Source: Perkinsus chesapeaki ATCC PRA-425 (taxonomy: Eukaryota > Protista > Perkinsozoa). Taken from it: a stretch of 64,000 nucleotides of DNA. A program made the translations under genes and the position numbers. Positions 10,410-59,045 of this stretch are shown here, piece after piece. The stretch's first letter is position 1; every line of letters starts with the position of its first letter. The stretch covers positions 14,519 to 78,518 of the forward strand of contig JAAPAO010000098.1 in the NCBI GenBank assembly GCA_013115145.1, in the 5' to 3' direction. A model generated the notes under the pieces. That model was given only the letters and a program-made list of their open reading frames with translations, ran no database searches and was not told where the DNA came from.

Positions 10410-13400
10410 TCAACTGTCACATTCCTCCAGAATCATCTCCGCCATTTTCCCAGCCAAATCACCGATCTCTTCTGCGTGCTCGCTGAGGAGCGCTTGAAGC
10501 CTCTAAAAATGCACGCCGATGCGACCATAGACCAACTCGCGAGGAAGTCAAAATGTGCCAATCGATTCTATCGAAAAACGAAAATCTTCACCAAATTGCG
10601 CAGCGAGCGGAGCGTAAACTTTCACGTCACACTTTGGTGCATGCGTGCAAACAGAGCGATCTAGGGAGGCTACGACTACATGCTTTATATCGTCTGATAA
10701 CTCTTAGGTCTGGGGATCGAACCCGCGAACCTCCTACAGAATTTAATGAGGACTCGCCGAGATCAGTGCCTCAAGTGGCAAGACTTGACAAAACGATCAC
10801 GAAGAAGGTTTGTAACATTACAGTACGTTCTACACGTAGCGCTCCCAAGTTCGAAGGGTGGAACCTCGGTTCTCGAAAACATCCGTGAAAAGTGTATCCT
10901 GCATATCTAACTGATTCATCTTTCCTCACCTTGTCCTCGAATGAGCCTTCCAACAACCATCTGTGAATGCCGTGAAGACTTTGTTGTATGAGCCGTGCCG
11001 TTGGCTCATCCTCCCCGCTTAAAGTTGGTAGATCATTCCACTGAAAGGAAAGACGAAAAGCTGAGCACACTTGAACGGCTCTTAGAGCGAATTTAAAATT
11101 CGTTCCAGCCGAGTTCTCGAGTCCCATATTGTGACATGCTTCGCTATTCAAGGTCCCCCCTCAAATTGAGAAAAACGCTTGGGGAAATAATCCGCATTTT
11201 ATTCACTTTCGTCTATACACACAATCGAGGGAAATGAGAGAGTGGTACGATCACTCTAACAGTCGCGTAAACATAATCGAAGACAACTTGACAATCTCAC
11301 CTTCTCCTTCTCCATTGAAACAAATCGTTCGATAAGCGGCCAATACATGGAGTCAGTGAAGTAAGCCATAGCAGTCGAGTTCTTGGACAAGTAACTTGTA
11401 CCAGCAACAATGTCACTGCGCCACGATATTCCTTCTCACCTCGTTCGAGTGGTACTCTCGTTTTCGATGAGGTCTATTAAAGTCGAGCCCAGAGAGTTAA
11501 ATGCCGTTCGCGTCTCATCAGGTGCCCATGGATTCTCCACCTATGTAGGATCGTCATTTCTGATTGAAAAAGCGTAAAGAAGCTCCAACCTGCTCCAACG
11601 ACGATGTGCATGCGGCCAGATCAGCGGCAGCCCAAGCTTGCAAAAGTACAGGCGACGCCGTCAAGCTTCGTATCTACCCACGAAACTTCCCAAACGCTTC
11701 GCCATGCCATCTCGGCTACCAGTTCATCCGAGGCGTCCTCACCAGCAGAGACCTCAACGTCGCTGACAGCCGCTAGATACTGGGAGAGATGATGAGCAAA
11801 CAGCTGGGGGGAATCCAGTACGATCGGCCACCGACTTTCCCAGAAATAACTAAATTGAAGATAATAATCGGTAACCAGGACGGGAGCTTCTTACTCTCCT
11901 AATTTTTTGGCAAAGTTGAAATCGAGCTTTCTCCGAAGTTCGCTAGCGTTCTCCTGGCCAGCTTCGGCCAGCCATCGATCGAACACCGTCTGGCAATGCT
12001 TCCAGATATCCACAAACCTCGCAATCGCCCACTCTGGCCGATCCAAGCGATTCGTACCTTCACAAAGATAACTGTAAACTCTACGGCGCGAAGAGATCCG
12101 CCGCAAACATCGAGGTTCTAGGAATACGTATAGTTCCCGCAATCTAGAGGTCGAAACTGTTCAGTGCAAGGGCCCTCGACTATGGCGAGTTTTGAGGTGA
12201 GATTTGGAATGTAAAAACCTATAACTATATTATTTTGGAAAGCTGGTTGCGCAGGCCGAACTCTCGGAAAGTCTCTAACGTAACGAAAATGAGTCGAAAT
12301 CGAATAATAATCGACACGGGAGGTAGAATTAATTTCGAAATGCCAAAAAATTCTGCACCGAAATTCATTTAAGATGATGTAGGAATACTCCACAATATGA
12401 AACTGCTAAACTAGGAGCGTTTACAGATGCGTGACAGAAGTCCCCGAATTCCCGCTGCGCCACAAAACTGCCCCACGAAACTGCCCAGTCTTACTTGCCC
12501 CTTCCCTCGCAAAATGATAGAGGAATCTTTGCTGCAATAATTTCTTCGTCAGAGCTTCAAACGACCAACAGCCGCCGTCGGAGGAGGGGGATCCTGAGCA
12601 TTCAGATGGTCGAGTGATGGTGATGATAAAACGCAGGATCGTACGAGGACTTTTCCAGAACCGACAGTCGACTATTCTCTTCCTACCAATAAGTAGAAAC
12701 CAACGCATCCCAAATCGCCATTCCTAGGACATTTAAATCAGATTTTTCCCGCCAGCCGAGACGACACAAACAAGCCGCACGAATCCTTCTACCGAGGGGC
12801 TCCTCACCTGTCTTTAACACTTCACTATATACCTCCTGCAGCTGGTCTAATATAACCACCAAGCCAATAACATCTTTTCCTGTAACTGGTGGGGATCTAG
12901 GCCGACTCAGGGACTCCACTGTAACCGTTGACATCATCCATTCCCATGAACTCGTCACCAAATCCTGTCAGCAAGCAACGCCCCAAATACGTTCATAATT
13001 CCGCCGCTCTCGATAAGCACAGCTAACCACTCAAACGTGAATCCTATCGTACGCATGCGCACTGACAGTCTTTTCGGTGAAAACCGAAAAAATACCGGAA
13101 TTTTCGGTAAATTTAGTCAGTAGTGTTGGAGTACGAATATGTTACCGAGGGAAGGAATTCTTGATGAAATTTTACTCTGTTGGATTTTTGCATCTCCGAC
13201 CATTGAAGACTGTCTCATATATGTCGATTCCGCGAGGTAGAGCCCAACCGAGAGAGGCAGCCGACGACACTGTTAGTCACAATTTCCTTACCCTGGCAAC
13301 TAATGCAGAAATGCTTGGACATACATTCCCTTCTATTTTCCGTATAATAGGCGGGAGCTTCGCGCTTCTCTCGCAGGGAACCCTTCAAGCTTCTAGCTTA

Positions 13401-14560: not shown

Positions 14561-14569
14561 AAAGACATG

Positions 14570-21535: not shown

Positions 21536-22835
21536 ATGTCAAATGCTTTGTCTGCTCTTAAGGTAAGCCTTCGAGTCCCGGTACCATATCACCGTATATT
21601 GACGGCAGCAGCCAAGTTGACTCCCTATTCGCATCTAGCTCATCATTGGCGACACTCAGCAGCAACGGCAGCAGTACAGTCAGGAACTGCCTTGGTGTTT
21701 ATATACTTACCAGTCATCTGGAAGACCAAGAAGATAGAAAGATACTCTTGAAGGTCGAATGAGCACCTCTATTCGGCGCATCATTTCAGATAGTTTAGGT
21801 TGTCCGAGCTCCCGACTATGAAGTTGATACCATTACGGCCACCGCTGAGGTCTACCCGAAGTTGCTGACCGATCCTCGATGCACGGTACCATGGTGCATT
21901 ATCGATGTTATATGTGATGATTATGACTGTCATGATGATGTGGAGGATGATGACGATGAAGATGTGACGGCACCTGTGACAGCGTTTCATATACATGTAT
22001 CGAGGTGATAGAGGGAGGGGCTTGGGTAGCTTTGAAGAAGGGGAAGAACACTCTTCAGGAAGTGCAAAGTATCAATAAAGCACTGAGAAATCTTAGTCGG
22101 GTAATTCGTCTTTTTGGTTAGGATCTTTCAACTTTGGTGTGATCCATTAATGCTCCTCACTAATGGAATCTAGGTCAAATCCTCGCGAAAGGATACGCGC
22201 ATTTCGAAACTGCTGGTAGGAAAGTCTATCTCGAAAGAGAATACAAAGTAACCAGACTTTGGCGGACTAGTGGAGACCGAATTATTAGTTTGGTAGTCGA
22301 CGGTATCTGCCTGAGCAGCGTTGTTTCTATGCAACGCGCGCTTCAATGACAGTCCCCAATGGAGACCCCCATGCGTTCGCGTAAACGCAAGTACCCCCAT
22401 GCGGGTTCCGTAAAATCATTTTTGTTGTACGCAACTGTGAAATCGCCGTTGTGCCCATCTGTAAGTGTCATGCACTGCGATGGTACAAGTAAATTTTTCA
22501 TGTGTTCTTCCACGGTAGGGGTAGAGCGGTTCAGTGTGTTTTCGGTATTACTCAATCCGCACAGGTTCGAATCCCAGTGCAGCGTACCTATGTCTGATCT
22601 TCTGATGAAGTGGTGGTTCCATACATCAGCCTTGGCGGACATAGCCCAGCTATGTGAAGTATTCGGTGCTTTCCTGGCAGCCTTCCACCATGATTATCCC
22701 AATCTAAATCACGGCGATATGAACCCTTCAAACGTTCTCGTTGGCGCTGCTACTGCTGCTGCTGCTTCGAAATCGGAGATGGTAGTCACGTGGGTGGGCT
22801 TTGGATCAAAGCCTTGGATACGCCCGATTCCGTAG
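21536..22835 (+). CDS. protein kinase-like/phosphotransferase-fold protein, multi-exon; structure uncertain
   Basis: GAFLAAFHHDYPNLNHGDMNPSNVLV catalytic-loop-like motif and VTWVGFG; upstream exon AEVYPKLLTDPR. Confidence 0.5.
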
Positions 22836-23907: not shown

Positions 23908-24894
23908 ATGAATGCAGATGATATGTTACTAGATGGGATGCTTTGTCCGATAAGTCAGCTGGTGATGAGGGATCCTGTCTGTAATAATAATAAGGGGATT
24001 TCGTTATACCACACTAGTGCATCTATAACGATCGTCCTCTGCTTCCTATGTCCCTTAACGATCTCCGAGGCTCCGTATGTTCCTGAGCAATCTCGAAGGG
24101 TCTATGATCTGGGTGTCAATAACTGCTCAACATACCAGAAAGTGTATGGTATGTCGAGCAGTAGAGTATATGACATCTACATAAATATAGTTTTTCGACT
24201 GCTAGATTATTACAGTCTGTCAATCCAATCTCAACGTATCTTTCTCTACAGTAAATTCTACATAGTGCGCTTACGCTCCACTGTACCGATTTTAGCAATT
24301 AGGGATGTCTCATCTTGGGAGGGAATCACACGTTCACTTGGCACTCTCGAGTAGTGCTTGAAGTAGCTTGAAGGCTTAGCGCCGCCGCCGATGATGATAC
24401 AAACGGGCGGTCGAGCTGGTGGACTTAAAACACTGTGCGTCTAATGAGGAATGCGTATTGCTGCCATTTGTAGACATGTGGTTGCAGATGAAATAAGTCT
24501 CCAAATTGGAGACTCCAATACGTGCAATGAATACGTACTTACTTTCGGAATTAGCATTCGTTCATTCACATATAGTAGGATGGTATACACCGTAGGTACA
24601 GTGGATGGTCATTCGTATGAGAGGTCAGCAATCGAAGCATGGTTTAATAATCAACATGCAGCTGGTTTAAGATACTCAAGTCCGATGACAGGGGAAGCAT
24701 TGCCCACACCGACTCTTATACCTAATATCACTCTAAAACGTAATGGGTATCTTTGCGCACTAGAAATATTTCTGCTGCGGTCCTCAGGGGTAATTGATGA
24801 TTTTTTGGATAAAAATCCGGAAGTTGAAAGGCTGATGGACTCGACTGCATCAGCGCCCCCAATGTACATGCAGGATGTAAAACGGACTGGATAA
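23908..24894 (+). CDS. U-box domain protein, multi-exon
   Basis: MLCPISQLVMRDPV joined to TVDGHSYERSAIEAWF...SPMTGEALPTPTLIPNITLK. Confidence 0.85.
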
Positions 24895-27069: not shown

Positions 27070-28420
27070 ACGTTGTTCAGCACGGCCAAAAGCACGGATG
27101 AAAACGTCGTCCAGTTAACATACTTGAATAGTGTATCCGCCGCGTGATCGGTGTTTGAGCAAACCGCTCCGGCTTCATGGGAGATATTGTTGCACAACCT
27201 GTGCAAGTCTGAGCTACTCTCATTTCAGAGTTACTTCCATCATCCAGGAGCGCACAAGTTGTGCGGCACAACAGAAGGGACACTTTTTGTGTCTTCTTCT
27301 TTAATCTCGTTCTGACGAAAGCCCAGAGTTCCTTCGCATACTGCACTGAACGGGTCAACAGTCGAGAAAGCTGTTACCTAGGAAATCCTCAAGTTTTGGG
27401 AACAAGACATCTCATTTTCAGGCTTACCGAACATTATGTAAAATCTGAACACATCATCCGGGGTGTGGTATGATAGCTCGCGCTCCTCTCGTACATTGAT
27501 AAATGTCGTCATACCTCGTCCAGTGTTGCGTATGCATTCGCATGCTCGATATCTCGAGTCTCGCATTAACGACTGGATCTTCTAGACTTTCTAAGACTTC
27601 GAAGCAGAACATCAATGAAACTCATTTGGTTCTTGATAGTTATGCAAGTGGACCTAGTTTCAGCTACTCTTTTTCTCAGAAGATTTTTCGCGCCGCCACA
27701 AGTGGCCACATTTTCGTGCCTTTTCAGATTGTGTTTTGTTCGTTTCCGTTGAGCATTAACGGTTATAATAGGAGTGTAGAATATCGCATCGACAAGACCA
27801 TAACAGGATGGGGAGGTACCGCACTCCGTCACCAGTATGTCGCTCCGGTGACTACTCTCTCAACCTTCTGATTTGATTTCTTACCAATTCTCTATTCGAC
27901 ATAGTTTTTCCATATCCTTCCTTTACCCTTTTACTCTTGGAATTGATTCCAGATCATTCTCTAAATTCTTCTTCATCCACCGTCATCGACCTTTCACCTT
28001 ACCTCTCTGACAGACGCCGTTAATACTATTCGGTTTATCACCTGTGGATAACGTAGTTCGTCGGCCTATGCACCAGATGACATGCGTCAGCTGGGCTCTT
28101 AAAAAGAATTGGAGGATCTTGTATAATATGCTATCGTGTTAAGTTATGTTCCCTTCGAAGTTTTGCTCTCACGCTCCTAAGGCTTTTCCGACTTGCCTTT
28201 ATTCGGATTGTTGCCGCCGTTGCTGTTGTATCGTTGCAGCGATCCTATAGTGGACAAGCTTAGCATCTTACAAATGCGCGTATGTCCTTTACCAGGGATC
28301 GAACCTGCGCCATATATTTGCCCGCTTCAGGCATTCACATCGGCGTTACACCAGATGACCCTAAGCTCCTCGCCAAGTCATCTAACTTGAGCACTTATCT
28401 CGAGGAGCATTCGTGGTAGG
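27070..28420 (+). CDS. hypothetical protein, multi-exon; ends approximate
   Basis: Exon-like frames EILKFWEQDISF, LTEHYVKSEHIIRGV, RIHIGVTPDDPKLLAKSSNLSTYLEEH bounded by GT/AG. Confidence 0.4.
28280..28330 (+). other. 51-nt predicted intron with antisense tRNA T-arm
   Basis: GTATGTCCTTTACCAGGGATCGAACCTGCGCC...CTTCAG; reverse strand reads GCGCAGGTTCGATCCCTGG. Confidence 0.6.
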
Positions 28421-29884: not shown

Positions 29885-32800
29885 ATGTTGAATCTTCAAG
29901 AAGCCGAGCGAGCGTCTTTAATACGAATGTTGAACCTGTCCGTTGGACCGAATGACACCGGTAAGGAAGTCTTCCGCGATACTCGCAAAACTAGTGGCTC
30001 CCACTCGTTTGCCAGGCGAGATTATTGAAGATATTTTATGAAACATGTGCATTCGTATGCGCACATTCAACATCCCCGTATTTCTCTCTTTGTTTTTCTG
30101 TCGTTCTCTGGACGCGTGTGTCTCAGGACGAGGAGCCGAGCCGCTGTCGGAGGCCAGTACACAGTGGAAGGTTCTGGTATATGACAAAAGCGGGAAGAAT
30201 ATCATTGCACCGCTTCTTAAAATAGGCAAGCGAGAGCCCAGGGAAATGTTAGGTTTTTCATGCCGTTTTAGGAGCTCTTCGTCACCACGGTGTCACCCTT
30301 TATCTCCAGTTGGAAGACAACCGGCAGGCAGTGCCGAATGTGAGCCGACGGGGAGCCTTGCTGGTCTACACGTCTTGAAGGAAGTTTTGGATGACTGTGT
30401 TCCACGCAACATTATCAGTCTTGTGAAATGCTTATAGGGAAATTTTCCGGATCGTCGCTCTAGGAACGCTCTGGGGACTCTGTAGTCTATAAGTAGCTTC
30501 TATCTAGGTCGTGCATTAGTTACTTTACTTTCTTGGGTTTTGGGATTGAATTTCGAAAGTTTCGAGCGAAAATGCCCGTCTCAGTGGCACTGAGAATTTT
30601 CGGCCAACAGTGATACAAGTTGCAATCATCTTTGCCCCAAGGAATTTCCGACGTCGCTGGAAAGACTGTTGTAGGTACCAGTGGTGTACTTTATGGATCC
30701 AACGAGGGAGAACATCGACCGTGTAGCTGTGGATTGCTGCGACAGGAAGCTTTATGATCAGGTAGGCTTCAACGCACCCGGGTTCAATTCCTGGTTACGG
30801 TATTTTAGGTTTATATCAATTTCACTTCGCGAGTCTCGGACGAATTGTTGCAGTACATGGCGAAATGTATGGTCGAGAAGTCCAAGGGAAAGTAAGCTCG
30901 TCATAGGAAGTTTTTCCACTCGAAAATTCCATTACGAGTGTCATGCAGCAGGGAATCTAGGAACCATAGTCGTTTGGTTCGTTCTATTTAGTCCCACTAA
31001 CATAAGCCGAGTTGCAAAGGTCGTCGACCGTTACTGCGCATTCATCGCCCTTTCACCCTCAACCTTCTCGCTTAACATGCCGGGGGTAAGAAGCTAACCT
31101 ATTTTGTATCTTTAGATTGAACCTTTGTGATACTTTGCAGGTTTATACGCAACTTCATTCTCGCCGTGTAACCGATGCAGCAATTGAAGGATGCGTCGAT
31201 CATATAGTTAACGGTCTACTGAGCATGCTAGTGACAATTAGACAGGCAAGTTAGCCTAGAGGTCAGGTTCCTCATTCTCTATCGAAAGGTCGTTGGTTCT
31301 AACCCCACCACGGCTATTTACAGATACCAATTATCAGAGCACCACCGGAGTCTCAATCAGGCCCGAGCACCATGGTGGCTGAGAGGCTTCACGCTCGGCT
31401 CATGGAAATGCTGCGAAACGGCAACGCTCAGGTAGCCTTTTTGCGCTCCTTCATCTCGACTTACTCCCCGCCTTCCCAGACACAGGAGCTCTTCAGCAAT
31501 GCCACTGGAGTTGAGAGGCCCCTCCTCATTATATTAGATAGAGATATGGACCTGGCAACTATGCTGCATCACACATGGACCTATCAGGTGGGGACTGTTG
31601 CTGTCTTTGGTCTCTATCAGGAATGATCAGGCGTTGGCACATGACCTCTTTGACCTCAACCTCAATACTGTTAAGATTCCCGCTGATGATGATGCCAGTC
31701 AGAGCAGCGGAGCGCAAGGAGTAGGATGTCAGCGTGGGTTTGTCGGTTTGATAGTTGCATGCTTCGCTCCGCCCTATTCTAGTTTTTTGTAGGTCGGTGG
31801 AGCGCACAAGACTTATGATCTGGACTCGTCTGATACCTTCTTCGTGGACCATGCTAGCATGCCGTTCCCCGCAGTGGCAAGTGACGTCAGCACACAGGTA
31901 GGAATATCCTAATCGATCGCGTGATCGATATATCACTCTTCTCAGTTGCAAGAGTATAATAAGAAATTGCAGGATATGCGGTCAAAAGACGGAGGGACTG
32001 GGTTAGGCGGAGCGAAGCGTGTCATGTTTTACGGATTTCGCCCTCTCTCAGGAAGCTTTCGTCCGCCATCAATGCCTTGCCTCAAATGACCGAGATGAAG
32101 CGATCGTTGGATGAGCATACAAACATTGCCAGTGCGATGTTGAAGGAGATACAGCAGAGGGAAATAAACAAGTAGACAGATAATTATGATCACCCGAGAC
32201 TTGAGGATTCAGATACTACGAGACGGAGTCTGAGTTCGGGTCGCAGGGCAGAACGGCAGGAATGACGGCACTGATGGAGAGGCTGAGCCCCGATAGCAAA
32301 GGCACACCTACCGGTAAGGAGTGTCCCGAATCTGGCCGCGGACCTATCGATTGGTTTTGTTAGATAAACTGCGAGCGGCTTTAGTTTTTGTGCTGAGGAA
32401 ACCAACTTTGACGTCCGATCAGGTCGATGGCATTTGTCACCGTCTTACGGAAGTCGGAGCTGACCCCGCAGCGATACAGTTCATTCGGGTAACATTTGTG
32501 GAGAACTCACTCTCTCTCCCAGTTGTCCTATTCAGAATCTGCAATCGATGCGTCAGCTGACACTGGATACAACCGTGCTAGGCGACGGGCAGGGAGATAA
32601 GCAACAGAGCGACTATCAGCAGCAGCAGGCTTCGTCAACTGAGTGAGCGTGTGATTCCCGCGGGCATTCACGTTTGTCACTTTCAGCGTCACCAGCGGCT
32701 TCGCCATGTTTGCCAATAAGTTCGCTAGTCAAATGCAACAGCATGGAGAGGGTCTGCTCACAGGTATCTCAATGATTGTTAGTATTGCTGATTTCTTACG

Positions 32801-39859: not shown

Positions 39860-42800
39860 AGGTATTATACCATCATCAACGCACTATTTACCACACAAAC
39901 CACTCCCAAGCCTACAGAGATTCCGACCCACTAACAAACCTACGGCAGCTAGCTTGGCTTCGCTTGAATGCTTTTTCAAAGTATCCTCGTTCGACACCTC
40001 TGCTGTTCTAACGTCATCTGTGATGCCTTCATCGGCGACTTCGCAACTGTCACTAGAGAAATTGGACGGCTTGCGAGGAGCTGCGAGCAAGGAAGAAGTC
40101 TGAAAACCAAGCAACGAGTCCAAAATCGAGATTCCTGAGCTCGCCACCTCCAGTGACTCGGATGCCACGGTGGGAGCCGGTGCAGGCAGCGACGCTTCTG
40201 GCGGCTCGGGGGTACGAACTGTGACAGTAGAGGAAGGTGGAAGAGGCGGTCGGTCTGAAAGGACCATAAGTTGCTCATAGCGCAGCTTTGGGATATTTCT
40301 TAATGGACACACGACCAGGAAATCAACGGCATCCATTACCGATATCCGCTCCAGCATAGCGTCTGTAAGTCTACAGCGTTCCTAGTCGAGGAACTTTTGG
40401 GGAATTTGAAAATCGCAGGTGGTACGAGAATGAGCCGCTGGAAGCCACGGACCCCTCTCCCGTCCCCCTTTCTTTGTGAACTAGAGCAAGCACGGACAGT
40501 TCGATTTACATCTCGCACCATAGCAATTCGGGTCCCCTACGATCTTGCTCGGCCGACAACCAATCCGGACTTCAGTGAAAATATGAAGTAATATTAGTAA
40601 TTAATAGTAGTAGTATAAAGTGATATAATTTATAATATAAATATAAAATATGGTTGTCCGCTCAATTTTCGTTGATGACCAAGATTGATGCAAGCAGCGT
40701 GGCGGAGGTTCATTCTCACCAATCGAAAAATGCCGATAAACCAGCCGATCAGCGTCCCGTTCCCGCAGTCGCGTTATTCACCCACCAGCATTAATCTTCT
40801 CCATCTCCGCCAGCTTCTGGCTCTTCTCGGCGATCTCCTGCTCCTGCGCCGCCGACCGAGACTTGGCATCCTCCAGCGCCTTGTCGGCTTGCTCTGACCG
40901 TTGCTGCTCCCTCGAAAGATTCTCAGTCAGCTCCGTCCTACACAACGACTACCCAAATAGCAGAGGAGGAGTTAATCACCTTTCGTTTCGGAGAGCAACA
41001 ACTTCCTGCCGTAGCTGCTGGAGTTCTTGTGCCAGTCCCGAACTTTTATTTTTCTCAACCTCCAGCTCGGAACGGAGATCTGGATCTGATGGAAAAGCGC
41101 GCCCAATGGAGCTCATCGATAGACCGCGATGGTGATTAGACAGTCCGAGGTATGTTTCGCCAGGAACACGGGGCGACCCGTGACTTTCTATTACACTATT
41201 TCGTACCGCTTCGACCTTGAATCACGAGTGCAGTAAAGTGGAGAGCTACGGTATGATACGCCTTAGAGGACCAAGAATACGTCAGCAGATCTGCTCCCAC
41301 GCCAGAGGTTGAAAAATAAGACGCTTTTGTGATCCCCTGGAGAAACAAGCACAAAGTGTACCAAATTGTAGCTAGCAGGAAGTCCCCAAAAAAATTTTTA
41401 CTGGCCACCGAAGAGAAAAATCTTTACTGCACGATTATGGCTTAAATCTGATTATGATCTTACAGTCGGGAGCTCTTGGCGACCTCGGCGAATCCGATGA
41501 TACCGATCTTGGTGAGAGCGGAGATGACTTAAGATGGTCCAACTCGAAGTTGAGCGCATTCCTGAACAGGGAATACAAAACCTTCCGATACTCGACCCGG
41601 CGATTTCAAAATTAGAAATCACTTGACTGAGAACTTCTCAATGAGATAGATCTGAGCTTGGAACTTCTCAGATTGTTCGAGTTCCAGTGAATTTATATCG
41701 GTACAAGCTAACATTGGGACGCGTCCGATAGCCAAATCAGGAACAACAATCACGGAACACCCAAAATCATAAAGAATCTTCCGCTCTAGTGTGGTGCATG
41801 GTTCAAGCTCGCCGGCATTATCTTACTTCTGGGCCTTAAGCTCTCTCACTTCAGCTCTTAGTCGGAATATAGTTTGCTCAGCATTTCTCAGACTGTCACT
41901 CAGTTCCTGTTCCCGCTCCTCAAACATAGACTGGTCAGGCTCGGCTCGCTCCTAATAAAATCCATCGCTCCGCTCCGCCTTCCAGTTTTTAGATTATACC
42001 ATCTCTTGCATTTCGATGCGCATTCTGTCCCGATCCTCCTCCGCTGCTCTTAGCTTTCCCGTCATGTCCGCCAGAAGAGCCTCCGATTCCCTGACGAGCG
42101 CCATTCATCCCAGAGAAGGTCCCGGGTTCGATCCCCGCTCGGCGCTTTTTGCTATTTATATTTCACTCCACAGTCAATACTTATTCAATACCCGAAACAA
42201 CCCTCATTCCCCTGCAACAGCAGCGGAGCGAAGCAACTCACTCATTCCGTTTTCGTTTCTCGCTGGCATCATTCTCAGCCTCCTCCAGACGTTTCTCCAA
42301 TCCCTCATAATCCTCCTGATCAACCCATCACTCCTCCACCTCCCTCCTCCTCCCTACATCTGTGTGCTTTGCCGTTTTTTCAAAGACCGGCTCCGTCTGA
42401 GTTTTCCTGCTTATTAAATCCAGCTCGTCAGTCTGCGCTGACTCCGGCCGACTCTCGGGTACCTTCCACGAAGCATTCCGCACTTCCGGAACAACTCCAA
42501 AGCTGACCTCCGTTTCCGTGCCCGCGTCCACACCGCTCGGCTTGTCTTCATCCCGCAAAGTTCCTCCGATCGAGTCTCTCGGAGTTCCCCGAGGACTTGG
42601 AGCAACCGGAGGCTTTCCCGCTGCAGCGTTTTGACGAGAAAGAAGGTCAACCTACTTAAGGTCGTGAGTTCGATCACGATCTCGGACGTTTTTACCCGTG
42701 CTAAAAACTCCCTTCGCTGTCGCAATCGAGCTATCTGTTCCTTCTTCGCCTGAAAACAGCCAGATCTCTATCAGCGATATCTGAGATTTCCTCATCGAGT

Positions 42801-47600: not shown

Positions 47601-50600
47601 CTTCGTCAAATTTTCAAGTGCGAACGCATTGGCCTCGACCAGTGCCACGGAACAGTTCTTGGAAGTCTCCATCATGTTTAACGACACTCGCGCACCACTT
47701 CTCCAGCCGGGGAGGTTCGAGTGGCTTCAACACCTCCCCCGACCGCCGCCGGCTGTCCCCATGACACAATCCTTTACCTTTGAGTCACTTGCTTCAATTG
47801 GCTCTTCAATTCCGCTACTTCTAATTTCTGCTGCATCATCTCTTGGAATTCATCTCGAGACACCAACAAAGATTCCTCCGTCACACTTGGTGAGTACCTG
47901 ACAAGTGCCACTTCAGCAGCAGCAGCAGCATGAACGAAAGACATGCCCCCCTACCGGTGACAGGGAGCTCACCACTGCACCATATCAATATTCATATACA
48001 CGCTAAATAGTAACTCAGTATTGCTANNNNNNNNNNNNNNNNNNNNNNNNNNNNNNNNNNNNNNNNNNNNNNNNNNNNNNNNNNNNNNNNNNNNNNNNNN
48101 NNNNNNNNNNNNNNNNNNNNNCCCTACCTAGACTTGTGCTATATAGTAACTCAGTATTGCTACCTAGACTTGTGCTATATAGTAACTCAGTATTGCTACC
48201 TAGACTTGTGCTATATAGTAACTCAGTATTGCTACCTAGACTTGTGCTATGGTCTCCTAGACCGGAAGTGTATAACTAACTAAGCTACTAAGGAGTATTA
48301 TATTTCCATAAACCAATAGATACTGTCATTACACGACGACACTAAGATCAGATAGTAAAGGGAGTTCCAAAACTTCCTTAACAACTTTAAGCTTTCTCAT
48401 TTCCTCAACAAATGAACATGCCAGAATGAATCTTTGTGAGATTGTTACCTATAACGTGAAGAAGACGATCAGTTGTCCACGAAGTTTTGAAACTCTCTTT
48501 ACAATAACTAATATATCAATTACATTAATTATATAACATAACACTACAGCATTTCCTCGTCATGTTTCCGACATGCGCACTGTTATTTCCTAGAACTAGA
48601 ACTAGTTCTAATAGGCGTCCTTGTAATAGTTACCTCCAGGCTCTAGACGACAAGATGGTCCTCTCCAAAACTTCTTTCCCTTCAAACATAATCCGCCCGG
48701 GCAACATGCTACTAGTGGCATTGGTGACAGTTGATGAACCTGCCAGGGATCGAACCAAGGTGCACTGATGACAAGTCCAACACCCTAACCAACTAAGCTA
48801 CCTCCCTTCGCTTCAGCGTTATAAACGCCTCCAATAAGCCATGGCTGGTTGGCCGCCTCCTGTCCACATACACACCCTTGAAAGCCTTGATCTATCTCCA
48901 ATTGCAATGAGTTGTTCCTCGACATCGATGTCATCGTCGTAGTCGCCGCGGAGCCCTTTCTCCTCGAACTCGTAGCAGTATAATGACAGTCCGGCACCTG
49001 ACAGGTGGAACAGAATATACTATATAATAGAGTAAGACTTTACAACTACTATTTATAGTTTACTATTACAGTATATATATACATTTCTCTATGTAACGAT
49101 TTTTTGTTCAACCATTACTCAGAGCCTAATTCGAATATCACAATGGTTGATGAGGCATTAGAAAGAGCTCACTAAGAGCTTCAAGTTCGCACCTTACTTC
49201 ACTCGTAACTTTCACGCGCCAAGAAAATATGAGGCATGGGCCATTTTTTCGCATCACCCTGTATGTAATCACACTTTTTTAATAGTGCAGCACTTCTCTG
49301 CCTTCGACCAGGCAGCAGCAAGCGAGTGGCAGTATAGGAGTATTGCTGCGGGCTGAGCAGCCTTAAACGACACAGGTAGTCTGCTATATTCACTAAGCCG
49401 AGAAGGCCTATTGTTATACTAATATTATATTGATATATATTACTAAATATATTATACTATATTATATATGTAAATATATTATATTATAATAGTAATTAAT
49501 TATTAATGTGAACATCACAATGGTATAATATAACCAACTTATAGTATCAATCTGGTACATCACACCACTGCATACGATACAGCGTCACCTTAGGAAAATG
49601 TGTGTTGGCATCTTGCCAGTCAAATTAATAATCCCATGAAAATTGGCCTGCGGAATAATTTTCGGATTAGGATATAAATAGGGGTTTATATATGAGGGGT
49701 TTATTTATCGACCAGTATTCCTGAGCTATGCTACTGTGCTGCATTGCCATAAGACCCAATTCAACCCGTAGACATGCGGATCAAAGAATGCACCGCAAGC
49801 CTTATTCTTCGTCTTCTAGTGGAGCTATTTCTCACTATTGTCACATTTATAATAATACAATATTCCACCTTATATATGCGTAATATTTTCCTATCACATC
49901 TCCGCTTTTCTGGCAACACTACTCGACCCTCCTCGAAGCTGGCTCCACGCCTCCCTCTTACTCCTGCTAGCATCGGTAGCTGCGCCATTATATCAAACAC
50001 CGATCCCGGCGGTATTGCTTTCGTCACCAATGCATTAGGAACTGCTATTCGCCAGGAGCCATCAGACATACTAAGACGCACCAAGGTTCGATCCTCGCCA
50101 GCGGCATTTTTACCTCAATAAAGTGTCTCGCATACACAGCCTCATTCGCCATTCCGGCTCCACCGCATCGACCCCATCGCTGAGCGCCGAGGCCGCTGTC
50201 GGGGAGAGCACCCCACCGTCATGCAGGAGACCTTCCTCGGCCTTCTCAGGGACCTGCCCTACTCCTTGCATTAGACCGTCTGAGCAAATATAAAATATAA
50301 TAAGATCTTGTAATATATGAATAAAATCATTTTACAATGAAGATGAAGTAATAATTCCATAAACAATAGGTATCATGACATGAGCAATAGTAAGTACACT
50401 TATAATAATATAGTACTTAATATAACGTAAACACTACAGGCCACTTTATAGGGAGAATAAGATCAAGTAGTTCGAGCAGCATATTAAGCGAAAAGTATGG
50501 TAAGAACAAGCACAAGCAGTAAGTCTACTAAATAGCGAGCATACTAACCTCAGAGTATCTTCTCTCCCCTCCCAACCCCTTACTTATCAAACCAGTCACC

Positions 50601-53600
50601 TTCCCCCATTCAGCATCGCCATTAAACGATAAACCATGGAAGCAGCCCTCCAACGGTCGTGCCTGTTGAACTAAGTGATTACCCAGACTCATATAGATGA
50701 TGATAAGGCTCACGTAGCTGGCCTCAAATTGAGGGTCTCCAGGTTTAGCGTCATTCTTTCCCGTGCCTTTGTTGCTCTCTGTACACGCCAGTAGCCGCGC
50801 AGGCACCTGCACAGTTGGAAACTGCTTACATTCATCAACATGCGGAAGAAATAAAATTCCGCTGAAAAAATTTAAAAAATTTAGAAAAAAATTTTTCCCC
50901 TCAAACTAAAGCCACCGGTGAAAAAGAGTTCAAAATCTTCGGAATACTTCTACTCAACTGAGTACAACAAACAACCACTTCCGCCCTGCCGATGAATCCT
51001 CAGCGCCCGCAGAGCCGGATCGGTAAAATAGTACTTATTAGAATTCCCCTATTGCATTTTATATTGACGAATGCGATGACAATATCCAATCCTGCACCAC
51101 TATCTCATTCCACTCGTTACCTGATTCTTCGATCGCCACTTAATCGTTAAACCCTTCCATTTCCGCCTGGCAACTTCATCTTCAGCCTCGGTAGCCTCCC
51201 GAGCTGCCCCCGGATGATGACCAGGCAGCCTGCTCCTCAACACCCATCGAGAGCCTCTCTCTAATAGTAACTGAAAAAATACACTCCACCGACGGAGCGA
51301 ACCGCAACAACTTCGGTGAACAGACAAACGGTTGTTGGAACATATAGGCAAGAGCCAGTGTACGCGACATCCCCAGCTGACCAGCAAACACAGTAGTTGA
51401 AAAGGCGCGCAGAGGGTCCAAAAACGCATAACAAACATCTTATATAGTTATGGATTCGGCTGCATGCAATTACTCTACATTGCATTGTGATTAAGTTCGG
51501 TCTCGGCTGGTCTTGAATCATCATAAGGAGTATTCTCGAAGTAGGAGTGAATTATAGTGGACACAAATCATCAAAGTATTCAGCCGATATGGCCGAGGTA
51601 TATAGCAAATGGGAATGCCGCCGTTGCACTTGAAAAATAAATGTATTGTCAACAAGCGCGCGTTTTGGACGACACGAACTGCATTATATATAGCAAACGG
51701 AAATAAAGACGACCACCACACATGCAGCAGGCAGGGCCGTAGGTGACGAAATACTCCTGGAATTTCATCGTACCACCCTTAGTCTCACCTGGCCATTAGT
51801 AATAATACTGGTAGAGGCAACCGGTTCGAAAGGGCAGAGTACTCGACTGCACAGCGACTTGGCAATCTGACAAACCAACAGCCATCTGCGCAAGTGTACG
51901 CATGCATGAGAAGTAGACAAGTACCATAAACCTAGGCCATTCTACTAACCCTGACAAACCAGCAGTCACCATCTTGACCGAGCGCCACGACCCTTGCCCA
52001 AGATGAGATATGCAAAACGATCCCCATCCCAGGGCTCCCATCACTCACCTGTAAAAATTTCTCCGACTGATTGGCAAAACATGCCACCATCACCAACTGC
52101 GGTCTGCCGTATGCATTCTCGTTCTGCGAGGTCTGGTCATATTCCCGAAACACAAACCGTGTTGTCGGGCCAGCCGTACCGCCTACCCCGCAATAATTTC
52201 GTGGCGCAGCGGTCATTTCCCACCTTCGTTGTCCTCCTCTATCTCAACTATGAACTCATTTATATGATAATGATTGAATCTCACTTCGCATACTTTATCT
52301 AGAATCCGCAGCTCTGACATCCTGATAGCGTCCGCACCTGAAAAAAATACATTAAAATGACATCTGTGGGATTCGAACCTGCGCACCTTTCATTTCATCC
52401 TCATCAGTCCATAATGCAAATCCTTCCACATCATCTGACTCTCTCTTTGCCCCTGCATTAGCCCCCTTCCCTCGCTCATCGTATGAAGCATACCGCTCGG
52501 CAGCTTCCTTATCTGCTACTATAATACCAGTAAGAAATGCTATGTACCAGCTACATCTCTCTAATATATGTATCATCACTACCGATATGAAGTACTATTG
52601 CGGTGACGAGTACATCACCCTCGCATGAGGATGATGAATCCTGTAGCGCTCCTTCAGGCGGCCCATGCAATAATCCGCTAGCGAACTATATATAAGGCGT
52701 TCTTTCCACCGAAAGGTCCCCGGTTCAATTCCATGCACCGGAAGATATTGTAATGCGAACTATTTAAGATTAATTTAATACGTGAGAGGACTATTTACCA
52801 GCCCATACATTCGTGGATGCTAGTCTATAATACCAATCGGAAGGTCCCCGGTTCAATTCCCAGGCCTACCATCTTCATCCTCATCCCCAGAGCCCTCATG
52901 ATCGCTAAAAGCGTCCTGGAATGATCCTCCAGACGAGGAAGACCTCCTCCGTCTTTCATCACCAGATGAGGCGTCACTGAAGCTTGAAGTGGCTCTTAAC
53001 ACTAAATACCAAAAATTTTAAACAAAAAACGCTTCGCTCCGCTCAAGTACAATGAACTTCAACGACTACGCTGTCGAGCCCACAACAAAAAGCCCCCTTG
53101 CCTCTCCATCACGGACCCGGTCCGCTAACTCGAAAACGAATACGTCGGATTGCTGTTATTCCTCCACTAGAAGATTCCACGTATTCCCAACAAAAATGCG
53201 AATCATGAATCGCTTCGCTCCGCCCTCCTCCTACATTGCTCTTCATCATCATCAGGTGAGTTCCCCTCTTTAACCACTATAATTTCATCATCTCCCTCCG
53301 CTGTGGTGCTGCTGCCCTCCTGGTCCTCTGCCGGGGGTGCCGGTCGATTCCCCTCCTCCTCCCGCTTCCCCGTCGTCGACTCTTCCCTTTTACTTTCCTC
53401 TGACTCTACTCTAGTATGATGACTGCTACGCCTTCTAGACTGACTTGGTGTCTGATTGGCCATCATGGCCTAAAATAAAGATATCACCACTACTTGGTCC
53501 CATCACTCGTAACGAGCAGGAGAGGTTTATGAGCATTAATCATCGTAGCATAAATCATGATTTTTATTGACATCTGCGAAACTTGATTCTCTTTTCTAAG

Positions 53601-56600
53601 ATTTACCGACTTATTCATAACTTCCAATAAAGCGGATCCTGGCTCATGATTTTTAATTTCTAAATTCTATAACCGTCCAGTAGGATACCATAAGATCGTC
53701 GGCCACTACTTCTCGATAACATTGACGCAGATCCATAAACCTCACTGGCCATAGCTTCATAACTTTTCTGACACCTCTAGCCACCCCTTATGACCTTAGT
53801 CGCCTTATGCAGTGTCTTTTGGCTTTTATTAGCATTCTTCAGTACTTGCCCCATCATAGCATTTCCCATCTTCTTTGATTCCTTAAACATCTTCTTACTA
53901 TAATGTGATGCACTCTTCATAACCTGACAAAAGCACTTCATCCCCGCCTGGACTCACAATCACTTTTCCTCATTGAATGCCTTTCATCACCACAGGGCGG
54001 GCCTATCATTACCAGCAACAGCAAATATCGCATTCGCAAAAGCAGATCGTTCTAAAACGATCCGTCTCCAAAGCCATTCTAGCTTACTCAGCAGGCCTGC
54101 TACCACACCCTAATTCAAGGCGCGTAAGTATTCTATCTCAACGAGGCAGTTCTGCGCGCGCGGAAAATTTCGGGCGGCGCCGGTATCTTTGCACCCAGGC
54201 ATGAAACGGTTGATCGATTTACATATTCTTCCTTGCTGTGTCTTCTAGTACTAAGCTACAGAGTTTTAAGGTCGTACACTCAATAGCAGACGAGATATCG
54301 TTAAAAAACGAAATATTCTATTTCATTGGGGAGGGCTGTATAACAAATCAGCATGAAGGAGAATGAATGCTTTGAAGAACCTATTCCCCCTCATTTACAC
54401 CGTCTCCTATCGGAAGTCACTCTTCACAATCCCCCCTTGCCCGAAGACTTCTACCTCATTTGGATTGGACGGATGCTTATAGTCATGCTTATATGGTCGG
54501 ACTACAGACTCGTACTCTGGTACCTGAACAAGCCCAGTCACTCTCCTGATAATTTCCCGTACATACGCGCGGCAGGTCGCCGCAACCAGTGGTTTATCAA
54601 GCAAAAATGTTACACATGCCGTACACTTGCTTCGCCTAGCAGTTTCAGTTGATGCTCATAACATCATTTTAGCCGATCTCATCCCCTCGACCGCCGTGTT
54701 ATATGATAAGAATTTGTGGAGAGGTTTGGGCGCGCTGTGTTCAGTCCTCAGGGTTGGGCTGGAATCGACATTAATTACCTTTGCTGTAACATCTGCAGGG
54801 CTAAGGATAGTATAATACTCGAAAATTAGGACTTGATTTGCCTCTGAACTCGAGTTATGCGCAGAACACCGTTTATGATAAGGATGTGTGGAGCAGTGTA
54901 TTTCCAATAAGCTTGCGATAGGATAGAATAGGGTATAATATTATATACTCACACCCGTCCCTTGTCATTTTATATAATAATAAGAATACAGCTATAGCCC
55001 TTGAAGAGCAAGCTACCACATGAAAGGATTAAATAAAAGGGGATATGATAGTTCTATATAATTATATGTATGATGATAAGTCCTATACAACAGATATCAA
55101 TTGAAGGCATCCCCTGCCCTCATTCTACCTTCGGTAAGCTGCTCGCTACGTTATCCTTAAGTGAACCTCCATAAGCTGACAATAATAATCATCATGAATG
55201 TCCAGATCACCCCAAAATCCACATCACACAAAACCCGAATAACGCCTACGCTATTCATCCTACAGCTCTCTTACAAAGGGAAATTTATCAGCTCCGATGC
55301 CCTAGAAGAGTTGACAGGATTGGACGACATATAGCTTAAGAACAGCACATGTGGACTAATCTGCTAAGTAAGTAATCTACTAAGTCTCAGTTAATTCCTA
55401 TGACAGGTACATTTTAGTAAGCTCGTGCAGATCCCCAATTGACGGACATTTGGTCCCCCTATCAACTCCCTCTATCCTCAGTCCCCCTATCAACTCCCTC
55501 TATCCTCAGTCCCCCTACAGCAACTCCCTCTATCCTCAGTCCCCCTATCAACTCCCTCTATCCTCAGTCCCCCTATCAACTCCCTCTATCCTCAGTCCCC
55601 CTATCACCTCCCTCTATCTTCAGTCCCCCTATCAACTCCCTCTATCTTCAGTCCCCCTATCAACTCCCTCTATCTTCAGTATAGTACCTTCATCCTCCGC
55701 ATCAACCTTATCATGCTTATCAACTCTCTTCGATCGTTCCTGCTGTTGTTGTTTCTTTATTTCCATCGCCATATTCTTGAATGCATTGCCGTCCACCCAA
55801 GAGTAATGAAGATGCCTAAAAATAATTAATTAAATACTTTCTTCAACCATTCCAAAACGTGGCCCTAACCAACTGCCAGACGAACTAGCCAAAGTCACCT
55901 TCGTACGATATTCCGTAAGATAGGGAACCTTGTGCTCAGAATCAAGTAGTAGGGCATCATCGATTAATAGCAGACCCAGCACGATCTCTCCGAATATATA
56001 CATTCACTCTAGGGCAGCGCCTGGCTGGCAAATGGCCCCCTGATCCGAGCAGACTAGCAAGGTGAAGCAGTATGGCTACTATTTATAGCGACTCCAAAGT
56101 GTAACAACAACTATCTCCGTTGAGTGTGGGAATATTAATATTACCTGGCATTCTTGGGGAGGTTATCAATGGGGATATAAGTCGGCTGTGTGAGGTCGTT
56201 TAAAATATTATAAAGCTTGCCAACAGTCGACTAAAATGACACAGCCAGGGATCGAACCCACGACCTCTTGGTTAGCAGAACTCACCTTTTCGCCCTTGAT
56301 CTTTAACTCATCTAACCATATAGAGAGTCCTCCTCCACAAGTAAACGGCAGCTTAGACCACCTGACACAGCGTCAATTATAACCGAAACCAATTCCCATC
56401 CTTTTAAACAATCGGTGAGATTGTCCCTCCACGCATCTACGGTATCTCCTGTCCCGTGGTTGGCCGTTTAGTTCCCCTTCTACCTTTTCCCGTGTGTCCC
56501 TTTTTCCATAGCGATACTTTCTGACCGATGCTTTATTCGAATCCCACCGGTGTGCTCCACAAGAGACTCACCAGTAATGGCGCATATCACTGATAAACTG

Positions 56601-59045
56601 TCTGAAAAGAATTGCCGTCGCCGAGGATCGAACCTGGGACCCCCTACTTATAGTGTATAGACGCATCGTTCTAAGGAAGTTCCTCTCTTTATTGAACTGA
56701 AAAGCCTCCTGTGGCGAGTCCACATAGGATAAACCACTCCACTCTTCAGAAGAGCTAGGCTCCAAAAACTGATAGAAAAACCATAAAATCGAATCATCAA
56801 GCTCATCTATCTCGCAGCGTTAAAGCAACGACAACACTGATCTCTCCGCCACAGAACTTCAAACTGCACACCGATTGCACCGATGTGCACTCTTCCATTA
56901 TTATATAATAACAAAGTGAACTATTTTACTGTCTGAAAAACAACTGTAGCCGATAATATCATAATAGTAAGCAGAACCAGTCGCGTTGAGTTTAATAAGC
57001 AATCCTTTTACCCATTGTACGTATACAGCCCGTTGCGGTAGCATGCATCACTTAATAGTAATAATTGTGGAGTAGGAACGCAGTGGAATTACTAGTACTA
57101 GGGTCACTATAAGCCCGTCCAGATCTAGATCTGCCGTTTCGGTCAGCTTTATTTGCATGAAGCCTAGAATCGGCACACCACCCCTATCGGAGAAAAGTAT
57201 CTTTTCTTATAACAGATTACTCAATTACGCATCCTCCCCCTGAAATATGCCAAACCCGCCAGCCTTAACTGAGCAGCCTTAAAGACAACCCAACGAAAGT
57301 GGAGAGAGATGGAATTATTCTACCCCTGTGGCCCTACCGAGATACTTCTCAAATAACTTGCGTATTCTAAATAAGTCCATCACCGATTCCCGGCCCCCAG
57401 TGCACACTCCTCCCTCATATTACCGGTCCCTGCTGAATGCACGGTGCCATGAACAGCCCCTGCAAAAAAATCTTAAAAGCTCTCGTTGGGCTCTTCAACG
57501 GCGGAGCGCTGTCATCCATCCCACTGATACGCGACGGCGACTGGGTGAATCTAACCACCAAAAGTCACCGAAAAAAGGTTGCTTCGCTCCGCCTTTTTAT
57601 TACAGATTAATTGATATACTTTCAATCCTGAGCTGCAGGCCGGCCATTATGAAATCCCACCATCCTAGCTCGAGATTCCGCCGAAGCGATCGCTTAGATT
57701 CCGCATCGACATTGCTGACTGCCGAGTTGATATGCTGCTCCAGCAGTGCCTCTCGCTGCGCTAATGCAACCTAATAATAACCAAGCCTTCCATGCCACAA
57801 TAAGGAACAAATAGAATCGTTTAATACTAATACAGATAATTATTCAGCCGTCTCCCCATTACCCCAGAGCTCTTGAGGACTACTGGAGGGGATGTTCCCA
57901 TGCAGCTGCCTGTATGTTACTACATGCTCTACGGTTAGTATCGATTGCGGAATGTGTCGCAGCCTATTCGCACCATCAACCCAAAATCGAAAGAAACCTC
58001 AAGCAATCAAAGACTCGTCCCTATCCCCGACTGCCAATATATAACGCATTCATTTCTATGTATCATCTGCCGCTATAGGTAGCCGCCTGTTTGCCCTCCA
58101 ATAGAGGAAGATTCAAAATAGGTTACCTTGCAGTTCCATTCGACATCACCATACATATCATGTACAGTACAATCAAGCTCCAGAGATGGTATTGTAATAC
58201 AAACCTTGCACAGCAGTTACATTATATCGATTACAACAGCGACCATCAACTCACCGGTTTATACCGTAACTGGGTCCACGGGATCTTAACCACTGCCATA
58301 CTGCAATACGCTCGAGTGATCTGAGGAGGCATCGTCGAATACGAAGTTACAATCGATACGATGGCCGCCGGAGTGTGAGAGAATAGATCACATTTCAAGA
58401 GGCCGACCGAGGGTCTCGACATCCCAGTGCTTTAAATGACACCGTTTATGACCTTGTTCGTTTGACAAAGATGCCTTTTCGAAAGCTTTAAGAAGCTCGA
58501 AGCACGGAATCGAAGGCCAGCGAGGAAGATTTGATACGAACTGGTAATATCAAAGTTGCGAGATTGTTCTTCCCTATTGTGGTTTTCCGTCATCGAACCC
58601 TCCAATCAACGTATTCCGACTTCCCCATTATTAATACTAGCTAATAAAGGTAAGTGATAGATGCTTAATCGCTTAGCTACCTCGGTCGTGTAGGGCAGAA
58701 TGGTGTCAACCCACTCCTTAATGGCGTCAATTTCAAGCTCGAAGGCATGTAAGGTGATCTCGCCCGACATCAGAGACCTGCAAGAGGGCTCGCTGGGGTG
58801 GGGACGGGTATAGGTTATTACGCAGAGACTTGGTCATATTCCAATCCACGGATGTACTTTTTCAAGTACCCCATAATGGTGCTTTTGTAAAGGTAAGATG
58901 TCATATTTATACATGCAGCAACAGCACCGTCGTCGACAAAAGCTCAAATACTGAAAAATGAAGATTCGCCCAAGGTCACTCAGCTGACCTCAAAAATATC
59001 TTTTATGAGACATATTCTACAATAGAGTCGCGTAAATTCGATCAT
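44675..59045 (-). CDS. very large Chorein-N (VPS13/ATG2/BLTP-like) gene; N-terminal assignment good, 3' extent speculative (may be 2-3 genes)
   Basis: 5' exons SLMSGEITLHAFELEIDAIKEWVDTILPYTTE|ITRAYCSMAVVKIPWTQLRYKP and WDFIMAGLQLRIESISINL match Chorein_N; contiguous minus-strand exons continue to ~44.7 kb. Confidence 0.55.
46647..46908. repeat. 37-bp tandem array spanning an N gap (46738-46836)
   Basis: aact(g/c)agttatacagtcactaaggtacactagtaggc on both sides of the gap. Confidence 0.95.
48007..48250. repeat. 36-bp tandem array spanning an N gap (48027-48121)
   Basis: atatagtaactcagtattgctacctagacttgtgct repeated. Confidence 0.95.
48740..48801 (-). other. 62-nt predicted intron that is a near-complete tRNA body (A box, Thr-UGU-like loop, B box)
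   Basis: GTAGCTTAGTTGGTTAGGGTGTTGGACTTGTCATCAGTGCACCTTGGTTCGATCCCTGGCAG; removal joins NAEAKG|GSSTVTNATSSMLPGRIMF in frame. Confidence 0.75.
50071..50113 (-). other. 43-nt predicted intron = antisense tRNA 3' end with oligo-T
   Basis: Plus strand CCAAGGTTCGATCCTCGCCAGCGGCATTTTT; splicing joins MRDTLL|SMSDGSWRIAVP. Confidence 0.75.
52338..52386 (-). other. 49-nt predicted intron = sense tRNA 3' end plus T-run
   Basis: GTGCGCAGGTTCGAATCCCACAGATGTCATTTT...TTTCAG; joins DEDEMK|GADAIRMSEL. Confidence 0.75.
52702..52738 (-). other. 37-nt predicted intron with antisense tRNA T-arm
   Basis: GTGCATGGAATTGAACCGGGGACCTTTCGGTGGAAAG; joins VRITISS|ERLIYSSLADYCMG. Confidence 0.65.
52820..52869 (-). other. 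50-nt predicted intron with antisense tRNA T-arm
   Basis: GTAGGCCTGGGAATTGAACCGGGGACCTTCCG...ACTAG; joins DEDED|ASTNVWA. Confidence 0.65.
55453..55680. repeat. 28-bp minisatellite, ~8 copies
   Basis: gtccccctatcaactccctctatc(c/t)tca repeated. Confidence 0.95.
56231..56285 (-). other. 55-nt predicted intron = sense tRNA 3' half plus TTTT
   Basis: GTGAGT...CAAGAGGTCGTGGGTTCGATCCCTGGCTGTGTCATTTTAG; joins IKGEK|STVGKLYNIL. Confidence 0.75.
56602..56647 (-). other. 46-nt predicted intron = sense tRNA 3' half plus T-run
   Basis: GTAGGGGGTCCCAGGTTCGATCCTCGGCGACGGCAATTCTTTTCAG; joins DASIHYK|QFISDMRHY. Confidence 0.7.

Follow-up and report, generated by a model that had tools for sequence, protein, structure and literature searches.

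Short introns resembling the 3′ ends of tRNA genes in a 64-kb region of Perkinsus chesapeaki

The final 64 kb of contig JAAPAO010000098.1 (assembly GCA_013115145.1) of Perkinsus chesapeaki, a parasite of oysters and clams, was analysed; this whole stretch is called the window below. Its genes include a Sec1-family (SLY1) gene on the + strand at about 30.5-33 kb and, in the existing annotation, a VPS13-like gene of 1370 amino acids (aa) on the − strand, which extends from about 58.9 kb to below 51.4 kb. Short candidate introns in these and other genes carry an RNA polymerase III (Pol III) B box set in what appears to be the 3′ part of a transfer RNA (tRNA) gene, and these modules, their relation to the splice sites and their likely origin are the subject of this report. 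The origin and content of introns is an old open question, and the recognisable sources so far are transposon-like introners. In this parasite, which has very short introns and weak splice signals, the recognisable source appears to be the tail of a tRNA gene, with its terminator end doubling as a splice signal in either orientation.

B-box modules and the introns that carry them

Exact matches to the B-box consensus GGTTCRANYCC number 10 in the window against 0.43 expected, and none of 100 shuffles reached 10, so that chance occurrence of the boxes was ruled out by the motif excess. Nine of the 10 lie at places listed in a preliminary description of this DNA, which had named 12 B-box introns, and the tenth, at 22564, is additional. 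Each of the three remaining listed places holds a box with one mismatch: 31295 (GGTTCTAACCC), 50085 and 56624 (GGTTCGATCCT). The boxes at 50085 and 56624 have the same mismatch variant and similar flanks, suggesting that the ‘mismatch’ was probably inherited from the source tRNA. All 12 places were accordingly recovered, but two of the listed introns, at 52702 and 52820, are parts of a single intron of 350 nucleotides (nt) in the gene model anchored on a P. olseni protein. A search based on module flanks gave two extra, decayed modules at 42667 and 51293, whose box has two mismatches. The mismatch classes are then 10 exact, three with one mismatch and about two with two, and the density of B boxes is about one per 5-6 kb. 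The orientation had been given as seven sense and five antisense; the count for the listed places is six and six, or seven and six when 22564 is added. The candidate introns are as follows.

10692..10739, + strand: candidate intron of 48 nt; antisense module with an exact B box at 10713-10723 (−) and no T-run; the + frame is open throughout and the − frames are closed
22515..22577, + strand: candidate intron of 63 nt, absent from the preliminary list; sense module with an exact B box at 22564-22574; AG 3 nt past the box
28280..28330, + strand: candidate intron of 51 nt, GTATGT...CTTCAG, with good splice signals; antisense module with an exact B box at 28295-28305 (−)
30762..30808, + strand: SLY1 intron of 47 nt, nearly all of it a tRNA 3′ module in sense orientation, with the B box exact (30781-30791); T-stem fully paired, acceptor strand present, T-run followed directly by AG
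31246..31323, + strand: SLY1 GC-AG intron of 78 nt; decayed near-full-length tRNA copy in sense; one-mismatch B box at 31295-31305, A-box-like site at 31252-31262, T-run just ahead of AG
42091..42198, − strand: intron of about 100-110 nt, 5′ end uncertain; antisense module with an exact B box at 42125-42135 (+), acceptor strand and TTTTT; splice acceptor CGTCAG at 42091, then an open glycine-rich frame
42652..42695, − strand: mini-intron of 44 nt, missed in the preliminary description and found via the module flanks; antisense module with a two-mismatch B box at 42667-42677 (+), V loop AAGGTC and terminator; starts GTAAAAAC, the complement of the T-run; built like 50071..50113
48740..48801, − strand: intron of 62 nt (50 nt possible); decayed whole tRNA copy in sense; exact B box at 48746-48756, A-box-like site at 48790-48800
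50071..50113, − strand: intron of 43 nt; tRNA 3′ module in antisense, its B box (50085-50095, +) having one mismatch; opens with GTAAAAAT, complementary to the terminator
51274..51779, − strand: long intron of about 506 nt; its 3′ end has a decayed sense module with a two-mismatch B box at 51293-51303 (−), then a T-run and CAG
52338..52386, − strand: intron of 49 nt; sense module with an exact B box at 52369-52379 (−) and T-runs ahead of CAG
52520..52869, − strand: intron of 350 nt; three antisense fragments of one tRNA type, with exact B boxes at 52850-52860 and 52722-52732 (+); third fragment, at 52519-52536, from the anticodon-loop region
56231..56285, − strand: intron of 55 nt, GTGAGT...TTTTAG, phase 0, within the annotated VPS13-like gene with 29 open codons on either side; sense module from anticodon loop to terminator, exact B box at 56248-56258 (−)
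56602..56647, − strand: intron of 46 nt, GTAGGG...TTTTCAG; sense module of the same type as that at 50085, one-mismatch B box at 56624-56634 (−)

The 13 modules with an exact or one-mismatch box were turned to the tRNA sense and aligned without gaps (alignment A1). Their order is V loop (RGGTC), T-stem, B box, 3′ T-stem, seven positions of the acceptor strand and a discriminator A. A T-run begins at one fixed column in seven of the 13 (30781, 31295, 42125, 50085, 52369, 56248 and 56624), and CCA is absent; this agrees with the seven introns for which an acceptor-like strand and oligo-T, with no CCA, had been reported. Four of the 10 exact boxes have GGTC upstream, a feature of about 1-2% of box-like matches in shuffles, and four have a T-run downstream (about 10% in shuffles). 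The modules are of several sequence types, in both orientations, and the copies are heterogeneous, with a mean column identity of 61%, box included. The longest stretch in common, 23 nt, is between two copies within one intron, and no long repeats were found.

The A box was not enriched (31 matches with at most one mismatch against 21.7 expected), indicating that the 3′ parts are what is retained, in both orientations; an A-box-like site or D arm is reached in only two of the 13 modules, 48746 and 31295. No intact tRNA was found in the window by ARAGORN, as had been stated previously, and an Rfam tRNA search of the whole window gave none at E ≤ 10. The loci retrieved for comparison contained no tRNA genes to serve as isotype references for the modules. 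Of the 39 cells for the three outer T-stem pairs in the 13 modules, 19 are paired, with no covariation beyond that of shuffles, which argues that the RNA fold has been lost; in the 10 exact-box modules 15 of 30 such pairs are still formed. A working tRNA or T-arm RNA was ruled out because the stems are not kept.

The ends of the modules were then compared with the splice sites. In sense copies the terminator T-run is followed by AG within 0-3 nt (30808, 56231, 31323 and 56602), so that the T-run does lie at the 3′ splice site, as first suggested. The antisense mini-introns at 50113 and 42695 begin with GTAAAAA, the complement of the terminator, and here too the terminator end is 0-3 nt from the splice site. 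The introns of the two longest sense copies begin near tRNA position 8, with G7-U8 as the GT donor at 48801 and, at 31246, a GC donor, GCAAGT, directly ahead of the A-box-like TAGCC. The module spans to both splice sites in at least seven introns, with one intron end being the terminator end. One end at the end of a Pol III unit and the other variable is the pattern of 5′-truncated copies ending at the terminator.

The 350-nt intron shows some further features. Its first 45 nt (52825-52869) alone would make a typical mini-intron. An 18-nt direct repeat, at 52519-52536 and 52825-52842 (306 nt apart), flanks the extra DNA and looks like a duplication, or an insertion within the anticodon-loop part of a tRNA relic. 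The acceptor of this intron, TATTATAG, is the complement of the anticodon loop.

Intron status and comparison with Perkinsus olseni

Anchors are available for six of the introns: homology to Sly1 for two, a P. olseni protein for three and the variants of a diverged copy for one; the basis for the others is open frames and typical ends. Across 30762..30808 an exon ending ...LYDQ is joined to one starting VYINFTSRVS, matching SCFD1 (LYESYYLNFISAIS). The exon after 31323 begins exactly with IPIIRA, aligned with Sly1 residues 218-223, and the upstream frame (...LSMLVTIRQ) runs up to the GC donor at 31246, where CAG/GCAAGT is a textbook GC-donor context for the putative 5′ junction.

The P. olseni protein, which supports three introns of the VPS13-like gene, is a fragment of 377 aa from a 3973-bp contig (P0005, the sole member of its cluster), about 80% identical over its best-matching stretch, and it maps piecewise onto 53.0-50.0 kb. 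It joins ...CMRDTLL to SMSDGSW across 50071-50113 and ...DEDEMKG to the next exon (...IRMSELRILDK...) across 52338-52386, and the model anchored on it has one 350-nt intron, 52520-52869, that holds both the 52722 and the 52850 modules. Within the 2.9 kb anchored in this way an exact or one-mismatch box is present in three of nine introns, and a two-mismatch relic in a fourth.

A diverged second copy of 48626-48942, 88% identical, was found beside the reference form in DNA runs X4-X6 (2022) and not in X3 (runs X3-X7 are all DNA); it represents a paralogue or else a haplotype that has diverged strongly. Of its 22 exon differences, 20 are at third codon positions, and these variants show that the codon phase shifts by 2 across 48740-48801. 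Variants are twice as dense in the intron (11/62) as in the exons (22/255). For 56602..56647 a second haplotype in run X4 has four intron changes, none of them in the B box.

Restoration of the reading frame on removal, earlier claimed for most of the introns, was confirmed at 30762, 31246 (GC-AG), 48740, 50071, 52338, 56231 and 56602, and open frames are joined at 52520-52869 and 42652 as well; for 10692, 22515 and 28280 the frame is uninformative. Donor sites here carry little information past GTR. A custom gene finder based on codon usage and GT-AG chaining chained either nothing or the whole window, codon bias being weak and splice signals poor. A test on open frames only covers 59% of the window and does not discriminate, and for this reason no window-wide intron count is given.

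Intron positions were shared with P. olseni in all three cases that could be compared, out of about 14 in total, and the idea of recent intron gain does not fit these positions. A clear tRNA-like module is present in P. olseni at one of the three only. Ordinary orthologous introns had no residual similarity (z −0.6 to 1.2), suggesting that neutral intron sequence is saturated between the two species. The 50071 module and its 47-nt tRNA-like P. olseni partner gave z 4.7 (P 0.003); 3 of 11 box positions differ, each species being one step off the consensus, and the partner scores 11 to its orthologue as against 8-9 to unrelated modules, a slight edge. The 350-nt intron corresponds to a P. olseni intron of 53 nt, in which the first 25 nt match at 17/25 (P 0.053) and the box is broken. 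The 49-nt intron at 52338 showed no similarity to its 164-nt partner. The P. olseni introns of these loci bear decayed tRNA-like pieces of their own at other positions.

What is new here is that three testable positions are common to P. olseni, one of them with a clear module, and that the box of the second copy changes at the neutral rate (2/11, against 11/62 for the whole intron). Old positions with patchy content would be more readily explained by turnover, or by retention in particular lineages, than by a box conserved uniformly over the long term.

In the same comparison about 1.7 kb of the P. olseni orthologue (L004 704-2393) stands opposite a P. chesapeaki intron of about 69 nt (52163-52231). 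Either a large insertion in one lineage or a modelling error in the region would explain the excess.

Origin and possible roles of the modules

The favoured explanation, to which a probability of roughly 0.55 can be given, is that the modules are what is left of the 3′ ends of tRNA genes of several types and form most or all of the approximately 14 introns, in at least five host genes, and that such inserts made or re-made introns. The derivation from a tRNA gene or its primary transcript, proposed in the preliminary description, is in itself well supported by the sequence, since V loop, T arm, acceptor strand and terminator occur in the right spacing and CCA is lacking. The modules may have entered as 5′-truncated copies ending at the terminator, in either orientation, their source being tRNA genes or unprocessed Pol III transcripts (a DNA and an RNA origin would look the same in sequence). 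In sense copies the T-run with AG would serve as the 3′ splice site, and in antisense copies GT with the A-run would serve as the 5′ splice site. The inserts may have created introns or re-made the content of existing ones; at the three comparable positions the event would precede the split of P. chesapeaki and P. olseni. The modules now appear to be decaying, their tRNA fold lost, and intact B boxes might reflect partial protection (by putative TFIIIC binding) or refreshment from numerous tRNA genes. At the 56248 module other contigs, from run X3, match from the box toward the anticodon arm and stop at the box, which would fit exchange with tRNA genes. Perkinsus introns are mostly <100 bp (PMC3101222), and in P. 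marinus some tRNA genes have hundreds of copies (PMC3706591); by analogy, this abundance would be a plentiful source of modules. In the literature no paper was found on tRNA-derived introns or intronic B boxes in Perkinsus, most subscription journals lying outside the coverage of the search.

A number of points weigh against this explanation. The Rfam tRNA model spans 48735-48804 end to end, at 14.2 bits against a gathering score of 29, but it gave no match for the short modules, whose tRNA origin rests on motif order and spacing. In the annotated 12.5-kb part intronic DNA far exceeds intergenic DNA, so intronic placement is partly what would be expected of any non-coding relic. Saturation of neutral intron sequence means that very tRNA-like modules at common positions need constraint, refreshment or re-insertion. 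The candidates at 10692-10739, 22515-22577 and 28280-28330 are multiples of 3, in frame and stop-free, so that the reading frame says nothing about them and they may be exonic. The region was absent from both small RNA runs with this species label, and the junctions are inferred, not read. As to an insertion mechanism, there were no clear target-site duplications, no nearby reverse transcriptase and no P. olseni empty site. In the literature no paper was found on tRNA-derived introns or intronic B boxes in Perkinsus, most subscription journals lying outside the coverage of the search.

A second explanation, clearly less probable and to be held tentatively, is that TFIIIC docks at the B boxes, which would be functional sites of the ETC/COC type, selected within introns and acting on DNA in either orientation, for instance in chromatin boundaries or in the loading of SMC complexes; the remainder of each relic would be free to decay. 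The boxes do have the B-box consensus without a working Pol III gene, as ETC and COC sites do. Half of the outer T-stem pairs beside exact boxes (15/30) are lost, so that nine unchanged box positions in each of ten modules would be unlikely at equal rates, although the broken stems may stem from truncation or splice-site overlap and not from age. The skew of the mismatch classes toward perfect boxes and the presence of both orientations point the same way, but modules chosen by their flanks mostly have an imperfect box. The tRNA-like 50071 intron keeps its similarity to P. olseni where ordinary introns do not; against this, the box is broken or gone in two of the three orthologous P. olseni introns and differs at 3/11 positions in the third, 17 kb of P. 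olseni loci contain no exact box, and the second-copy box has changed at the neutral rate given above. Selection for TFIIIC binding would therefore be unproven on the sequence.

Known sites of this kind, ETC in budding yeast and COC in fission yeast (PMC3395662), resemble the modules in having a B box with neither an A box nor a working Pol III gene, and in that orientation is irrelevant for a DNA-level role. Yeast ETC sites, however, are few, mostly intergenic and conserved among close species, whereas the putative Perkinsus sites are dense, intronic and visibly tRNA-derived, with patchy conservation.

It is unlikely that the modules are copies of an introner-like element, mobile now or in the recent past, of the kind of a tRNA-derived short interspersed nuclear element (SINE) or miniature inverted-repeat transposable element (MITE), that creates introns in exons. 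The reach of the module to both splice sites in at least seven introns, with the terminator end at one of them, would be in keeping with such an element, as would the 350-nt intron, in which three fragments belong to a single tRNA type and whose P. olseni counterpart is 53 nt long. The extra contig depth at several modules, which indicates similar sequence elsewhere in the genome, could be read in the same way. On the other hand, the copies are too heterogeneous to be near-identical (61% mean column identity, longest common stretch 23 nt), the A box is absent in 11 of 13, and terminal repeats and clear target duplications are lacking. Nor was lineage-specific presence of an intron seen: all three testable positions are common to P. 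olseni, and no presence/absence difference was seen among DNA runs over 49135-54171. In a SINE the 5′ tRNA head, containing both an A and a B box, would be followed by an unrelated body and a tail, but the modules stop at the T-run. Membership of an introner or SINE family, as envisaged in the preliminary description, is not supported by these sequences.

Introners and introner-like elements of Micromonas, Aureococcus, dinoflagellates and fungi (PMC9860276, PMC3609843) and the invasive intronic elements of Amoebophrya (PMC7789003) are similar in that the inserted sequence fills the whole intron, in unrelated genes, with splice sites at or beside the insert ends. They differ in forming near-identical families confined to particular lineages, in many cases bounded by terminal repeats and target duplications, whereas the Perkinsus modules are heterogeneous tRNA 3′ ends of several types at positions which, where testable, are common to two species. 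The main text of PMC9860276 makes no mention of Perkinsus or tRNA. tRNA-derived SINEs, some of them TFIIIC-bound in mammals (PMC3744447), are likewise dispersed, carry a B box and are common in introns, but they make up families and begin with the 5′ tRNA head where the Perkinsus modules are the 3′ end up to the terminator. Dada DNA transposons of P. marinus (PMC3706591) share the genus and target tRNA genes, at which the same paper documents heavy rearrangement, and their target TAGCTC at the A box is close to the start of the two longest modules. They are, however, 4.7-11 kb long and insert into tRNA genes, and no Dada ends or transposase were found here. By this analogy, a connection between Dada and the modules would be only a lead. 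In other eukaryotes, tRNA pseudogenes and nested tRNA genes in introns are separate units within long introns. The likeness is in having tRNA sequence inside the introns of protein genes; here, an intron of 43-78 nt consists entirely of the relic, the terminator end of which also serves as a splice site.

It is very improbable that the near-palindromic motif core acts in the pre-mRNA, as a branch-site region or a small hairpin defining very short introns: the core GGTTCGAACC is identical on both strands, in most mini-introns its A residues and the 3′ splice site are about 16-30 nt apart, and donor sites are poor in information past GTR, but the stem is not kept (19/39 pairs, no covariation), the motif is unlike the usual branch-site consensus, most introns do not have it, and in the 350-nt and ~506-nt introns it is far from the expected place.

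On a wider scale it is possible, though doubtful, that tRNA-gene ends are a major and long-running source of introns in Perkinsus, creating or re-making a sizeable share of mini-introns, with the B boxes as dense orientation-free TFIIIC sites in genes at about the density seen here. If so, the Pol III machinery would be tied to Pol II gene architecture, and binding of TFIIIC to the boxes would place thousands of Pol III factor sites inside Perkinsus Pol II genes. If the modules are mere decaying relics, they would still be a useful marker of intron turnover in the lineage.

Host genes, assembly and neighbouring features

An assembly artefact was ruled out because independent DNA runs yield contigs identical to the region. 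The assembly gaps at 46738-46836 and 48027-48121 touch no intron, the nearest being that at 48740, 619 nt away; the continuity of the gaps bears solely on whether 42-48 kb and 48-59 kb are one gene. At 49080-49263 and 48400-48600 the contig depth is 20-40x baseline, with many diverged contigs and one opposite-strand joint, a pattern suggestive of a repeat present in many copies, perhaps a small transposon, within the gene region.

A Pfam search of the flanking open reading frames (ORFs) returned Sec1 and U-box as its sole names, the U-box domain (PF04564, 24.8 bits) being in the ORF at 24448-24891 (+), and gave no confirmation of a RINT1 identity. An exon of SLY1 had no match in the protein database. 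In metagenomes (L005-L015) the same exon found SCFD1/SLY1 relatives at 41-45% identity only, probably animal by the look of the sequence, and in these genes the nearest intron is 2 codons upstream of the position of the 31246-31323 intron. A 262-aa ORF led to a Logan contig with just that gene and one adjacent ORF in common.

Near the window end the ORF at 61443-63350 encodes 636 aa; its P. olseni relatives are merely 39-41% identical, and the one that was fetched (P0003) has different neighbours. In the annotation the VPS13-like gene adjoins a ribosomal L7/L30 gene, by which lie two copies of an H/ACA small nucleolar RNA-like unit, 60168-60301 and 60736-60862 (+), about 568 nt apart. Their Rfam ceN84 scores, 35 and 33.8 bits, are below the gathering score of 80. 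DNA contigs at these units have a joint that goes back 529, suggesting a tandem repeat with variable copy number.

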